DNA from: Macrostomum lignano
Lineage: Eukaryota
NCBI GenBank assembly: GCA_002269645.1
Contig: NIVC01002845.1
Coordinates: 1-64,000, forward strand
Direction: 5' to 3'
Length of the DNA stretch: 64,000 nt
This document shows, one piece after another, positions 54,124 to 60,929 of this stretch (positions are counted from its first letter, which is position 1; each line of letters starts with the position of its first letter). The position numbers and the translations under genes are program-made. The notes under the pieces were generated by a model. It searched no databases, was not told the origin of the DNA, and saw only the letters and a program-made list of their open reading frames with translations.

Positions 54124-54220
54124 ATGGCTGCCTTGAAGTTCTTCGATTTTGCCTTTGTTGCTATGGTGACCGGGATGCTGATTATTCTATCCGATTATTC
54201 CGCTGCTAAGGAGGCGACGT
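54124..54220 (+). CDS. Secreted cationic-peptide precursor A, exon 1 (signal peptide)
   Basis: aaccATG; MAALKFFDFAFVAMVTGMLIILSDYSAAKEAT; donor |gtaagt, phase 1. Confidence 0.7.
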
Positions 54221-54787
54221 GTAAGTTTCATGTGCTAATACGATCGGTGCGACATGAGGTATCGGGACTGTGCCTTTAGTCTCGGCTGTGAGGTCTTAAG
54301 AAAGTCACTCCGCTTTGAACTCTTCAAAGCAAGCAATCACTCGTCACCCCTGCAGTCAATGCAACGCTGAATTTCCGTCCTGCCATGCCTTGAAGCACTG
54401 ACGAAATTCTTTAATACCCCCGAACGTGGTGGTCCCTGACGCCTGACGACCACGACTTCTTGGAACGGGTCATGACTTAAGTGACGAATCATGTGGTTTC
54501 TCAGTATGACCCTGAAACAAAAAGACAGCAGTGGATGGCTATCGCCAGATTTACATGTAACCTCGATCAGGAAAGGCGCGCACGCCAAAGACGAAGGTTA
54601 GTGTCATGTTAATCGCTTTTTGACTCCAACGGACTTGTAGTGCCGTCACAAGTCTGTGTCTGAAGGTCAAACTGTTGGCAGTACTTCTACTCGTGCTGCT
54701 CCATTTGGCCCTACAGAATTTCCTGTAATTTGGGCTCACCTCGTCAGATTTTGGGGCTCCGCATGCTTCAATTCTTATGTTGAATAG

Positions 54788-55112
54788 TCAGCCTGATGAA
54801 GCATGCAATTGCCAAACTGAACCGCCCTTTCCCAGATGAAGCCGAGATGGACATCATGGAATCCTTCGCTGTGCAGGAAGATGTCCACCACTTGCCGGAT
54901 ATGAATCATTTGCATCATCAGCATCATCATCATCGTCACGACGATGAAGACGATCTCGATGAGCACTTGCATCTGGACGCTCCGGCGCCTACGGAGGCGG
55001 AGACTGCGGCGTCGACGACGCCGGCCACCGCAGCGCCCAGCGTCCCGAAATTTCGATCGCGATTCGGTGGTTTCTCCGGCACCGGCAGTTACAAGAAGAA
55101 GCTGTCGCGCAG
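54788..55112 (+). CDS. Precursor A, exon with His-rich/acidic pro-region and the start of the cationic peptide
   Basis: ...HHLPDMNHLHHQHHHHRHDDEDDLDEH...PKFRSRFGGFSGTGSYKKKLSR|gttagc (phase 2). The 5' boundary is 54788 or 54792 depending on the upstream exons used. Confidence 0.72.
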
Positions 55113-55401
55113 GTTAGCCGCGACCTTTCACCTGCGAATTCACTACGCTCACGCAGGCCCCTGACTTTCTATAATCGTCAGGCAGATTGAGCCTAATTGG
55201 GGTTGGACCTCATAGATATGATCGAATCCCAGGACAACCTTCTGGCCAACTGTTGTACACACAAGCCCCCCAAATGAATGTGGTTACCTCTGAGCTGTTC
55301 CGACCCTGTGCAAATTCCCTTCATGAGTACGGAGTAATGAATATGCTCGATCGTGAATGTGAAAACCTGACCAGCATCAACATCCGATATCATTCCCGCA
55401 G

Positions 55402-55465
55402 ACGCTGCCGCAAGTACAGGTTCACCGGCCGTAAACTGGTCTGCGTTTCCTACTTCAAAAACTAA
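55402..55465 (+). CDS. Precursor A, last exon (RRCRKYRFTGRKLVCVSYFKN*)
   Basis: Canonical acceptor cattcccgcag| in phase 2; same exon structure as precursor B. Confidence 0.78.
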
Positions 55466-56159
55466 ACCAACTATCACTAGTGCAGTTGAACTTTTACGAG
55501 TATTGACAGGAGCTGCTGACTGTGTTCTGAAATGCTTCAAGCTTCAATAAATATACAACACATGTACAATTGCGTTCAAGCATATGCAGCAGTTTTTGTG
55601 TAACAATATCCTGTCCGAAATTTGTTTTGAGTGCGACCATGCAGTAATAGGACTGTAATTACAAGTCACTAACGCAATTTTGTTAAAAAGAGACGATGTT
55701 TTTTTGCTAAAATGTATAATTTAAACCGTTTTGAGCAGATTGGCCTCATGAAAAAGCGAAACAATGAAATAACTATAAATACCCATGGGTTTCCTCTGCC
55801 TAGCAAGCGGCATCAGATAGCAGAGGAGCGCCATGGGGGCAGCAAAGCGTTCACCAAACGCTTAAAGATGGCTTGAAGAAGATAGCCTGGACTGAACAAG
55901 CCGCGGGTCGGCGTCCTTGATGTTGAGGACTCGGGGGGAAAAAGCGTTGATCAAATCATCGATTTCTGCTGGATTTTCCACGATAGCTTTCCCCATTCAT
56001 CTTTACATAGAGTTTGGCTGTTTGTGACTGTTGCCATGGCAACTTCTGGATAGAAATGAATACATAAAATACCTGCGGGTCTGAGCTGAAGCCAGCGAAT
56101 TTTTGGGACTGAAAGCCTCTGGGAATCTATGCTGATTAAGGACTGGAATTCACGTCGGA

Positions 56160-56175
56160 ATGTTCTGGCTAGCCG
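56160..56175 (+). CDS. Secreted PAN-like + ALK/LTK-type glycine-rich protein, exon 1
   Basis: ATG TTC TGG CTA GCC G|gtaagc joins exon 2 to give the signal peptide MFWLAVPLFLLLAESASQLLA. Confidence 0.7.
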
Positions 56176-56214
56176 GTAAGCAAATGCTGCTGATGTGCCT
56201 AACTTGTCTGTCTT

Positions 56215-56910
56215 TACCTGCTGACTGCCTGCTGAGTGCCTGCTGACTGCCTGCTGACTGCCTGTTGACTGCCTGTTGACTGCCTGCTGACTGCCTGTTG
56301 AGGGTCTGCTGAGTGCCTGTTGGATGCCTGCATGCAAGGACTTCTTGCAGATGTTCTTGCCTGCATGTTGACTACCTGGGAGGGCCTGCTGAGTGCCTGC
56401 TGAGTGCCTGCTGACCTGCTGACTACCTGCTGACTGCCTGCTGAGTGCCTGCTGACTACCTTCTGAGTGCCTGCTGACTACCTGCTGAGTGCCTGCTGAC
56501 TACCTTCTGAGTGCCTGCTGACTACCTTCTGAGTGCCTGCTGACTACCTTCTGAGTGCCTGCTGACTACCTTCTGAGTGCCTGCTGACTACCTTCTGAGT
56601 GCCTGCTGACTACCTGCTGAGTGCCTGCTGAGTGCCTGCTGAGTGCCTGTTGACTGCCTGCTGACTGCCTGCTGACTGCCTGCTGAGTGCCTGCTGACTG
56701 CCTGCTGAGTGCCTGCTGAGTGCCTGCTGACTGCCTGCTGAGTGCCTGCTGACTACCTGCTGAGTGCCTGCTGAGTGCCTGCTGAGTGCCTGCTGACTGC
56801 CTGCTGAGTGCCTGCTGACTACCTGCTGAGTGCCTGCTGAGTGCCTGCTGACTGCCTGCTGAGTGCCTGCTGAGTGCCTGCTGAGTGCCTGCTGAGTGCC
56901 TGCTGACTGC
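56215..56910. repeat. 11-bp intronic minisatellite (gagtgcctgct/gactgcctgct)
   Basis: About 60 copies in intron 56176-56954. Confidence 0.95.
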
Positions 56911-58880: not shown

Positions 58881-59047
58881 CAGACCACAACACCCAGCGT
58901 ACAAATGCGATAGCTTTCTCATTGTCAGACAAGTACACACGGTACTTTGAGAGCCATCCCTCTGGAGTTGAGCCTGAGTCCTTCTGGCTCGATTTTTACA
59001 CTCTGCCAAGACTCAGGCAACCATGATTGTCCCCTTCGCCCCTGCAG

Positions 59048-59517
59048 CCTATTCGGGACAAGCTGGAGAGAACGGCACCGGCACGCACCCCGACAAGAAC
59101 CCTCCGGGAGGCGTTCTCGGCCAGCCCGGGCCTTCGAACTCTGCTACCAGTGGCTACTACGGCGGCCCAGGTGCCGGCTGGCTGAGCGGCGCCAACTCGA
59201 CTCGACGTGAGGACAGGTGCGGCGAGGGCGGCGGCGGCCGCGCCGAAGGATGGGTCGGCGGCCGCGGCTACGCCGGCACCGACGGCGGCTTTGGTGGTGG
59301 CGGCGGCGGTGCCTTTGGCTTCAAAAGCAGCTGCGGTGCCGGCGGCGGAGGCGGTGGCTACAGCGGCGGAGCGGGGGCTGCGACCTACGAAAACACTGGC
59401 GGCGGCGGCGGCTCGTTCTGCGCCGGCAGTGGCTGCGTTGGCATCTCGAACGACGGGCGCAACGGCGAGGAGGGACTCGTGGCGATCCGGCAGCTGAGCA
59501 CCGGGAGCTGCGCCTGA
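59048..59517 (+). CDS. Secreted Gly-rich protein, last exon
   Basis: ccctgcag|; GPGAGW...GGFGGGGGG...GGGGGGYSGG...GGGGGSF...GLVAIRQL*. Joined CDS is 1218 nt (405 aa) with no TM or kinase domain. Confidence 0.88.
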
Positions 59518-60208
59518 AGCCGCGGCTGCATGCCAGACTGCTGGCCAGACACGCGAAGATTAATGAGCATAAACCCAACAAAGGTTATGTTAGTTAGCTT
59601 GTTTCTATCGTGCCCATTTTCATTTTTTAGGCGTTTTTTAAAGAGAAGACAACTCATAGAAAGAAAAAATAAACACCATGTCAGCCATAATGTGAAAAAT
59701 TTCTGAGATGTCAAGTCTCATGGGGGATTACTGAAATCCTGCGGCTGTTGGGGGGGGGAGATGCTGAGATGCCAAGAGTCAAGTGGAAGTTATTGGTTAG
59801 GGTTATGGTTAAGCCATGGCCTATAGAGCGGCTTTTGAAGCCAAAAGCTCACAGGGGATGCTGATGTCTTAGGCTAGACAGCTGGCTTTCGGTGATTGAT
59901 GCTTTTTTGCTTTAAACATCATTTTCCATGCATATCTCTCCATGACTCTTAGCATAGTAACAAATCTAGTGTACTACATGTACTAGAAGTAACTTTGAAG
60001 TAGTTATCTTCTTCAGAGAAATACACATTTCAAATTAGTTTATGTATATTTGTTATTTTAATATCTGAACAGCTAAGATGAACGTTGTCCATATTTTATT
60101 TGAAAAATAATTTCAGTGAGAAAACCAAGATAATAAATAATTATATAAGATAATATTTATTACTTATTTTAAGATAATAACAAACTTGTATGACAGAACC
60201 CGTCACTT

Positions 60209-60269
60209 CTAGCTGGAATACTTGGCGCAGTACAAGCCGTGCTTGCCAAACTTGTAGTGCAGGCACCTC
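60209..60269 (-). CDS. Secreted cationic-peptide precursor B, last exon (RRCLHYKFGKHGLYCAKYSS*)
   Basis: Acceptor gccgatttcag| in phase 2; GC3-rich codons; AT-rich 3' flank. Confidence 0.8.
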
Positions 60270-60356
60270 CTGAAATCGGCACACGGCAGTTGAAATTTAT
60301 ATTTATATTTTGATTGCTGTGTTATAAACAAGGAGAAGGGATAATTTTGGCCCTAC

Positions 60357-60450
60357 CTGTGCGGCCCAGAGACGAAGTGACCCTTGCGACCGGCGGCTCC
60401 AAAGCCGCGCTTGTCAATCAGGTCATCCAGCCAGTCGGGCGTGTCCTCGT
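60357..60450 (-). CDS. Precursor B, exon 2 (acidic pro-piece, KR site, start of mature peptide)
   Basis: ggttttgcag|(D)EDTPDWLDDLIDKRGFGAAGRKGHFVSGPH|gtaggg; phase 1 to phase 2. Confidence 0.8.
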
Positions 60451-60835
60451 CTGCAAAACCGCGGTTGAGACTTTCAAGTACATTCAATTTCGAATGCAGT
60501 TGTAGAGGAAAAAATTACTCTTGGGGCAGGGGGTCGGCAAACTGGGAGAGAAAAGAGATAGGAGAAAGGAGAGATGAGGGAAGGTGAAGAGACGAGACGA
60601 GACGAGAGGAGGAATGAAATCGATGAAGGGAGAGGAGAGCTGAGAAGAGACGCAAACTTTGAGCGGGCCGGATTGCTTTTGTGAAGGTTCATAAGGACCC
60701 CGAGGGCCGGATAGAGAGGCTTTGCGGGTCGCATGCGGCATTGAAGACCTGGAATTCGTTTCCAGGTGGAATCGTAAAAGAGGTCCTTAGCTTCAGCTTC
60801 CATTTGTTAGAGCTATCATTATGTCTCAGACTCAC

Positions 60836-60929
60836 CGTCGGAGCTCTCGGCATCGTCGTAAGCCGGAGCAGCGAGTGTGGCTGCTACCAGCGCCAGAAGC
60901 AGCAGACCGTAGAGTGGCAGTTTGCTCAT
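60836..60929 (-). CDS. Precursor B, exon 1 (signal peptide)
   Basis: caaaATG; MSKLPLYGLLLLALVAATLAAPAYDDAESSD; donor |gtgagt, phase 1; TATAAAAG on the minus strand at 61033-61026. Confidence 0.82.

Follow-up and report, generated by a model that had tools for sequence, protein, structure and literature searches.

Two paralogous three-exon genes of Macrostomum lignano form an orphan prepropeptide family with a candidate C-terminal two-cysteine peptide

Introduction

Two neighbouring genes of the flatworm Macrostomum lignano, referred to as A and B, were analysed on contig NIVC01002845.1 (assembly GCA_002269645.1, Mlig_3_7). The window, meaning the whole stretch of DNA that was analysed, covers positions 1 to 64,000 of this contig. 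In the small precursors that both genes encode, a predicted signal peptide is followed by an acidic pro-region, by basic sites and by a cationic C-terminal part with two cysteines. This is the layout that a first-pass annotation, made from the letters of the window, had described, and it was recovered in both precursors.

Precursors of related design are found in several animals. The amphibian brevinin and esculentin precursors ("Rana box") carry a signal peptide of about 20 amino acids (aa), an acidic spacer that runs to KR, and a cationic peptide whose C-terminal end carries a disulfide loop. The annelid peptides arenicin, alvinellacin and capitellacin are cationic, Arg/aromatic-rich beta-hairpins with a single disulfide, derived from the C-terminus of BRICHOS precursors. 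The "spp" and "npp" prohormones of the planarian Schmidtea are flatworm-restricted small precursors with a signal peptide and basic sites, and are processed by PC2. Precursors of the somatostatin (SS), allatostatin C (ASTC) and urotensin II (UII) type carry a single two-cysteine peptide at the C-terminus after a mono- or dibasic site, with loops of 6-15 residues, while the loops of protostome ASTC have 6 residues (PMC7536072). The N-terminal intron is in phase 0 in SS/ASTC genes, where it is conserved, and in phase 1 in the genes for UII and for urotensin II-related peptide (URP), and the ASTC genes of Drosophila and C. elegans carry an intron of phase 2 in their C-terminal part (PMC7536072).

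Gene B matches the amphibian plan of signal peptide, acidic spacer, KR and cationic loop closely. There is no sequence relationship, however, and A and B have a loop of 11 residues with a tail where the amphibian peptides have a short terminal loop. In place of an amphipathic helix, the stretch ahead of the loop is Gly-rich and poorly structured, and internal RK and RR sites are found in B. The animals belong to different phyla, so the resemblance is convergent at most. The arenicin type is matched in having a predicted cationic C-terminal hairpin with one (assumed) disulfide in a spiralian animal; it differs in loop length and in its BRICHOS domain, which was not found in A or B, and the similarity of the arenicin loop to theirs was below the shuffle mean. 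A and B resemble spp/npp as small flatworm-restricted precursors with a signal peptide and basic sites, although no sequence similarity was detected (profile search, 1.84 billion proteins) and spp/npp were defined by peptidomics and expression, whereas A and B are defined by sequence. The comparison with the SS/ASTC/UII type is taken up below, where the possible functions are weighed.

Results

Identity and transcription of the gene pair

Genes A (plus strand) and B (minus strand) are neighbours in convergent orientation, with three exons each. When the exons that the first-pass annotation had proposed were joined, both frames stayed open, over 161 aa in A and 82 aa in B, with GT..AG borders in 4/4 introns and with the translated sequences as it had quoted them. 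Its description of the genes as hidden was wrong, since both were already in GenBank. The 82-aa product of B is identical (100%) to PAA54900.1 (BOX15_Mlig024524, g1/g2; hypothetical protein), while A on this contig corresponds to PAA54899.1 (BOX15_Mlig011470g1), a partial model of 130 aa that is also named hypothetical protein. Homeologous copies of A are deposited as PAA78046.1 and PAA80609.1, and several UniProt entries for variants of A bear the name "Secreted protein". Both genes are therefore already known as deposited hypothetical proteins that had never been examined. Neither the searchable literature nor those supplements of M. lignano papers that were available as text contained the identifiers Mlig024524, Mlig011470 and Mlig024363, so that no expression data were found through them, and no description of the family was found in the literature on Macrostomum neuropeptides, antimicrobial peptides and peptidomics.

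The Mlig_3_7 annotation draws on RNA sequencing (RNA-seq), on StringTie/TACO and on a transcriptome assembled de novo; its trans-splicing and poly(A) sites were determined by experiment (PMC5730564). As the models of A and B come from this RNA-seq-guided annotation, both genes are transcribed. Near-identical copies of the locus were found on NIVC01000709.1 and NIVC01000573.1, while window positions 50209-64000 were themselves 100% identical to NIVC01002845.1. The three contig copies are consistent with the high redundancy reported for the assembly (PMC5730564). All three genome copies of A and all three of B were intact. A and B thus constitute a genuine orphan prepropeptide family of two genes in three genome copies each, so far in one species.

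For gene A, the first-pass annotation was right about exon 1, exon 3 and the second intron, while its exon-2 acceptor at 54788 is probably wrong. That acceptor is in frame and is used by none of the deposited models. Models with both a Met start and the pro-region have the junction KEAT|YEAEMD at 54836, which gives 145 aa from Met and not 161. The acceptor of exon 2 therefore probably belongs at 54836 rather than at 54788, judging from these models. The splice 54596>54836, which joins an alternative 5' exon to the same acceptor, reproduced the 130-aa product of PAA54899.1 exactly. In a third model, the UniProt entry A0A1I8G410 (79 aa), exon 1 is joined at 55034 and the His-rich/acidic region is bypassed, leaving the signal peptide followed by SPSVPKFRSR and the peptide. 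The C-terminal peptide and the second intron of A are shared by all these models and are untouched by the corrected acceptor.

Paralogy of A and B

Paralogy of the two genes, as proposed in the first-pass annotation, is secure on the evidence of gene structure and of the peptide cores. A and B share the three-exon plan, including a phase-1 intron directly after the signal-peptide exon, which had gone unmentioned before. The phase-2 intron that had been pointed out within an Arg codon, two residues before the first Cys, is present in A (CGC AG|A CGC TGC) as well as in B (CAC AG|G AGG TGC). Both products carry C-x11-C-x2-Y at the C-terminus, the conserved unit of A being CRKYRFTGRKLVCVSYFKN. Within C-x11-C the loops are LHYKFGKHGLY and RKYRFTGRKLV, with Y-[KR]-F in both. 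Six-frame translation of the window contained only two sites that matched the motif C..[YWF].[FYW]....[LIVMF].C..[YWF], namely those of A and B.

Pairwise BLASTP aligned RRCRKYRFTGRKLVCVSY with RRCLHYKFGKHGLYCAKY at E=0.002, a value for a single comparison. Because it would fail a window-wide correction, each 18-residue core was scored without gaps (BLOSUM62) against every one of the 127,894 six-frame positions. The cores of A and B proved to be each other's best non-self match, with a score of 44 vs 28-30 for the runner-up and a background mean of -22 (standard deviation 9). With short-word settings, tblastn did not report the A-B match, perhaps owing to its seeding rule, and the explicit ungapped scan did. 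Both core matches lie in the last exon, end 5-6 codons before the stop and are preceded by an intron that splits the same codon in the same phase. It is the reciprocal core match, together with the same position in the gene and the same intron phase, that makes the paralogy secure. Across the peptide region, A and B are about 30% identical. No further paralogs were found in the window or within +-10 kb of the genes on the three homeologous contigs.

Search for relatives

A Pfam hmmscan of the full A and B precursors with E up to 10 returned no family, including neuropeptide, hormone, antimicrobial-peptide and BRICHOS families. An exhaustive search of 1.84 billion representative proteins with a HMMER profile of the peptide region retrieved the M. 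lignano A and B clusters only, and word-indexed homology searches with full A and B retrieved M. lignano proteins only. The same profile had no real match among PDB sequences; two matches with E of about 3 were rejected as a chance GGFSGxGS string in isoamylase. The Rfam scan of the window gave no match. The earlier failure to recognise a named family was thus borne out in Pfam, in the PDB sequences and in the 1.84 billion representative proteins. As nothing was matched in Pfam or the PDB and only M. lignano proteins were retrieved, the family is an orphan.

Precursor anatomy and conservation

The pro-region of B contained 26 aa with a net charge of -9 and ended in KR, with 11 D/E in the 24 residues before KR. 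The pro-region of A in the 145-aa form contained 80 aa, with 18 D/E, 12 His and a net charge of -13. The C-terminal part of B had 36 aa (7 K/R, 4 H, 0 D/E; net +7), while that of A had 37 aa (12 K/R, 0 D/E; net +12), and 18 residues separated the basic site from the first Cys in both. The D/E count before KR in B, the residue counts of both C-terminal parts and this spacing agree with those given in the first-pass annotation. The C-terminal parts were hydrophilic, with 27-31% hydrophobic residues (AVILMFWC), or 35-39% with Tyr, and grand average of hydropathicity (GRAVY) values of -0.6 and -0.9. Their N-terminal half was Gly-rich.

AlphaFold2 models, built on a very shallow alignment, were of low confidence overall, with mean predicted local distance difference test (pLDDT) values of 61 and 64. 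A beta-hairpin was predicted over the last ~16 residues (the Cys region) in both paralogs, with a block-mean pLDDT of 75-83, while the models outside the signal helix and the hairpin were mostly of low confidence.

Comparison of the homeologs of B revealed 6 substitutions, 2 of which were nonsynonymous (1 in the signal peptide and 1 in the pro-piece) and 4 synonymous. The mature region had 0 nonsynonymous and 2 synonymous changes, so that the peptide was unchanged. Exons of B diverged by 2.4% and introns by 5.2%. The homeologs of A differed by 5 nonsynonymous and 5 synonymous substitutions and one deletion of two His, with 2 nonsynonymous changes in the peptide region (K>R and, in the tail, K>N) and a divergence of 2.3% in exons vs 1.6% in introns. 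These substitution counts are too small for a selection test.

Processing and the candidate C-terminal peptide

Basic clusters were located at KR45-46, RK53-54 and RR63-64 in B and at KKK119-121 and RRR124-126 in A (145-aa numbering). Every K/R among the 18 residues that precede the first Cys belonged to a di- or tribasic cluster, an arrangement with a shuffle frequency of 0.04 for B and 0.03 for A. The RR of B and the RRR of A abut the first Cys and are the sole basic cluster conserved in position.

The first-pass annotation had placed the cleavage sites at KR in B and RSR in A and had taken the 36-37-aa parts as the mature peptides. The KR of B is indeed dibasic, while KFRSR of A has neither a dibasic pair nor an Arg at P4 and is therefore a weak, non-canonical convertase site. 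The composition of the 36-37-aa parts is as it was counted, but strong di- and tribasic sites lie within them (in B, RK and RR; in A, KKK and RRR), so that a second cut immediately ahead of the first Cys would be expected from the enzymes that cut KR.

In the proposed scheme, the signal peptide would direct the precursor into the secretory pathway, and the acidic pro-region (-9 in B, -13 in A) would offset the basic C-terminal part (+7 and +12, respectively). Subtilisin-like prohormone convertases would then cut the clustered basic sites, which are KR, RK and RR in B and KKK and RRR in A. The product conserved in both paralogs would be the C-terminal 18-19-residue peptide that starts at the Cys after RR/RRR, with CLHYKFGKHGLYCAKYSS (+3 plus 2 His) as the candidate from B and the unit given above (+6) as that from A. 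A C-x11-C disulfide, which is assumed, would hold this peptide as a loop or beta-hairpin, and it would act outside the cell. Short N-terminal by-products are possible as well: Gly-Arg-Lys after GFGAA in B is an amidation-type signal, and GFGAA-amide could arise from GFGAAGRK. The PC2 homologue of M. lignano has a nervous-system expression pattern, and its knock-down is lethal in hatchlings (PMC4490696).

Taken as they stand, the sequences resemble a prohormone with a product of 18-19 residues more than they do a single long antimicrobial peptide. A signalling role, as a neuropeptide-, hormone- or pheromone-like ligand, is tentatively placed as the single most likely class, at somewhat below an even chance. 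In its favour stand the clustered basic sites, the layout shared with SS/ASTC/UII-type precursors (one two-cysteine peptide at the C-terminus behind a basic site), the mature region of B, unchanged between homeologs, and the beta-hairpin predicted over the Cys region.

Several observations weigh against such a role. A tail of 5-6 residues follows the second Cys, and the C-terminus has no amidation signal. The loop peptides carry an unusually high positive charge for neuropeptides (+6 in A). In both paralogs the charge of the mature part almost balances that of the pro-piece, as is also the case in defensin-like precursors of host defence. By our own reading of the strand boundaries, the AlphaFold register pairs each Cys with a conserved Tyr and not with the other Cys; as Cys does not lie opposite Cys, an intramolecular disulfide is an assumption. 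The N-terminal intron of A and B is in phase 1, not in the conserved phase 0 of SS/ASTC. Their loops had no significant similarity to those of SS14, ArSS1/2, melanin-concentrating hormone (MCH), UII and AstC, the best value being p=0.04 among 20 tests. The evidence from conservation is also thin, with about six deposited sequences from a single species.

Other readings of the gene pair

A role in host defence is possible, though not favoured over the prohormone-like reading. Here the anionic pro-piece would silence the cationic peptide until the cut at KR/RSR, after which the 36-37-mer, stabilised by its disulfide, would damage microbial membranes. Net charges of +7 and +12 with zero acidic residues in the mature parts, nearly equal and opposite to the -9 and -13 of the pro-pieces, are in line with this. 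The enzymes that cut KR, however, would also act on the strong di- and tribasic sites inside the peptide, and RSR is non-canonical. The beta-hairpin predicted by AlphaFold2 over the Cys region also speaks for it, whereas the N-terminal half of the peptide is Gly-rich and modelled with low confidence. Cationic antimicrobial peptides are amphipathic and typically have about 40-50% hydrophobic residues; the C-terminal parts of A and B have 27-31%, or 35-39% if Tyr is counted, with a negative GRAVY. The family is lineage-restricted, and A and B have diverged strongly outside the Cys framework, the aromatic residues and the overall charge, as is typical of immune effectors. Set against this, mature B was unchanged between homeologs with no sign of diversifying selection (on tiny counts), and neither an antimicrobial-peptide family of Pfam nor BRICHOS was matched.

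A specialised gland product (prostate/seminal, adhesive, pharyngeal or rhabdite) is rather unlikely. The peptides would in that case be fast-evolving, species-restricted and active on a mate, prey or substrate, which suits the orphan status and the secretory layout of A and B. An in situ screen in M. lignano has reportedly yielded many putative seminal fluid proteins, and the sex peptide of Drosophila, a seminal peptide to which they would then be comparable in function, ends in a C-x11-C loop. The loops of A and B had no similarity to that of sex peptide, however, the clustered basic processing sites would be left unexplained, and the searched supplements of M. lignano papers contained no positional or tissue expression data that could be linked to the gene identifiers.

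It is improbable that A and B are highly diverged flatworm members of the SS/ASTC/UII superfamily with a long, deuterostome-like C-x11-C loop, acting on SS/ASTC-type or related orphan G protein-coupled receptors of M. lignano. Like those precursors, A and B have one C-terminal two-cysteine peptide behind RR/RRR, with the stop 5-6 residues after the second Cys, and their 11-residue loop is within the 6-15 range, the disulfide itself being assumed. The phase-1 N-terminal intron is shared with UII/URP genes, and the C-terminal phase-2 intron with the ASTC genes of Drosophila and C. elegans. In contrast, the loops lack the FWK/IWK core of SS and the FxP core of ASTC and have Y-[KR]-F instead, they have 11 residues vs 6 in protostome ASTC, and there is a 5-6-residue tail after the second Cys, no Pfam match and no significant loop similarity. 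The loops of A and B were compared with those of SS14, ArSS1, ArSS2, MCH, UII, AstC, sex peptide, arenicin, thanatin and bactenecin, and none of the ten was significant after 20 tests. With the core motifs missing, the intron in phase 1 and the loop similarity non-significant, membership is not supported, while a functional analogy may hold. If membership did hold, long-loop SS-like peptides would persist in Spiralia.

Least probable is that A and B are transcribed, functionless young genes whose likeness reflects recent local duplication only, as could be argued from their presence in one species only of the databases searched and from the exons of A, which were no better conserved than its introns (2.3% vs 1.6%; 5 nonsynonymous and 5 synonymous changes), since signal peptides, frames, Cys spacing, intron phases and poly(A) signals have been kept at a peptide identity of about 30%, the three genome copies of each gene are intact and the exons of B are better conserved than its introns.

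Gene models and coordinates

The features of both genes are listed in Table 1. The start codons of A and B both have A at -3.

Table 1. Coordinates of the features of genes A and B in the window
Feature	Coordinates	Strand	Details
Gene A exon 1	54124..54220	+	97 nt; good Kozak context (caaccATGG); phase-1 donor T|GTAAGT
Gene A predicted signal peptide	54124-54207	+	about aa 1-28
Gene A alternative 5' exon	54545..54596	+	within intron 1; joined to 54836 in PAA54899.1; without signal peptide
Gene A exon 2, deposited models	54836..55112	+	acceptor tttcccag|AT; PAA54899.1, PAA78046.1, PAA80609.1, A0A1I8FW78; in order: His-rich acidic pro-region, KFRSR, FGGFSGTGSY, KKK, LS, R, AG of split Arg codon
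Gene A short exon 2	55034..55112	+	acceptor ccaccgcag|CG, position read from sequence; UniProt A0A1I8G410, 79 aa
Gene A exon 3	55402..55465	+	last base of split Arg codon, Arg, CRKYRFTGRKLVCVSYFKN (55406-55462), stop
Gene A AATAAA poly(A) signal	55546..55551	+	~80 nt 3' of stop; read from sequence
Gene B exon 1	60836..60929	-	94 nt; start codon, signal peptide, start of acidic pro-piece; phase-1 donor G|GTGAGT
Gene B signal peptide	60929-60870	-	MSKLPLYGLLLLALVAATLA, 20 aa
Gene B exon 2	60357..60450	-	remaining acidic pro-piece, KR, GFGAAG-RK-GHFVSGPH, AG of split Arg codon
Gene B mature peptide of the first-pass annotation	start at 60406	-	
Gene B exon 3	60209..60269	-	last base of split Arg codon, Arg, CLHYKFGKHGLYCAKYSS (60265-60212), stop
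Gene B AATAAA poly(A) signal	60156..60161	-	~50 nt 3' of stop; read from sequence

Neighbouring features of the window

A multi-exon DEAD-box helicase gene (DEAD + Helicase_C) was found directly upstream of A at about 47500-51540 (+), with a product of 640-642 aa on the homeologous contigs, and the gene order helicase-A-B was kept on all three contigs. Just downstream of A, NIVC01000573.1 (about 11824-19012) carried an insertion of ~7 kb that was absent at about position 55673 of the window, a structural divergence between subgenomes. Between A and B, at 58117-59517 (+), lay pieces that encode a glycine-rich domain of the ALK/LTK type (PF12810; 8.5e-7 for 58117-58400). It may be continued by an open reading frame (ORF) at 59023-59517 (+) that is rich in Gly and has no Pfam match, with a minisatellite at ~58400-58950 between the two. 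As the accessions of A and B are consecutive (PAA54899/PAA54900), the ALK/LTK-type piece is apparently unannotated.

Minisatellite arrays were unusually dense in the window and appeared as long repetitive ORFs in all frames. They were located at 2288-3395, 9900-10670, 10850-12350, 15393-16861, 28069-28671, 47600-48624, 49900-50850, 51530-52240, 52605-53620, 56600-57000, 57710-58110 and 58400-58950. Several arrays lay inside introns of the DEAD-box helicase gene, and array lengths varied among the homeologous contigs.

Four further ORFs were recorded. The longest, at 21411-25121 (-), was uninterrupted over 1236 aa and contained a MACPF/CDC-like domain of the stonustoxin type (PF24674, 2.6e-8) and an fn3 domain (6.7e-10). 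A stonustoxin helical domain scored slightly below the curated cut-off; there were also a Cys-rich tail and, at about aa 676-860, a weak AIG1/septin-like region of the P-loop GTPase kind. The ORF is a fusion of a pore-former with a GTPase and looks like a protein of innate immunity. A 466-aa ORF at 40374-41774 (-) had a reverse-transcriptase domain (RVT_1, 2.3e-15) and is probably a fragment of a non-LTR retrotransposon. The remaining two are probably exons of nuclear regulatory proteins: a 639-aa low-complexity ORF at 12147-14066 (+), with a weak C2H2 zinc-finger match below the Pfam cut-off, and a 402-aa Gln/Ala-rich ORF at 35397-36605 (-) with no Pfam match.

Conclusion

Genes A and B are a clear-cut orphan family of prepropeptides. 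The analysis corrects the gene model of A and sharpens the prediction as to which peptide would actually be released. To our knowledge, M. lignano is the one flatworm with stable transgenesis, and the pair is therefore open to study by knock-down and reporter lines. We know of no gene-encoded cationic host-defence peptide of the A/B type that has been established in free-living flatworms; should the A and B peptides prove microbicidal, they could rank with the first such peptides to be described there. If they are ligands, they would represent a new cyclic peptide family for the poorly known signalling repertoire of flatworms.

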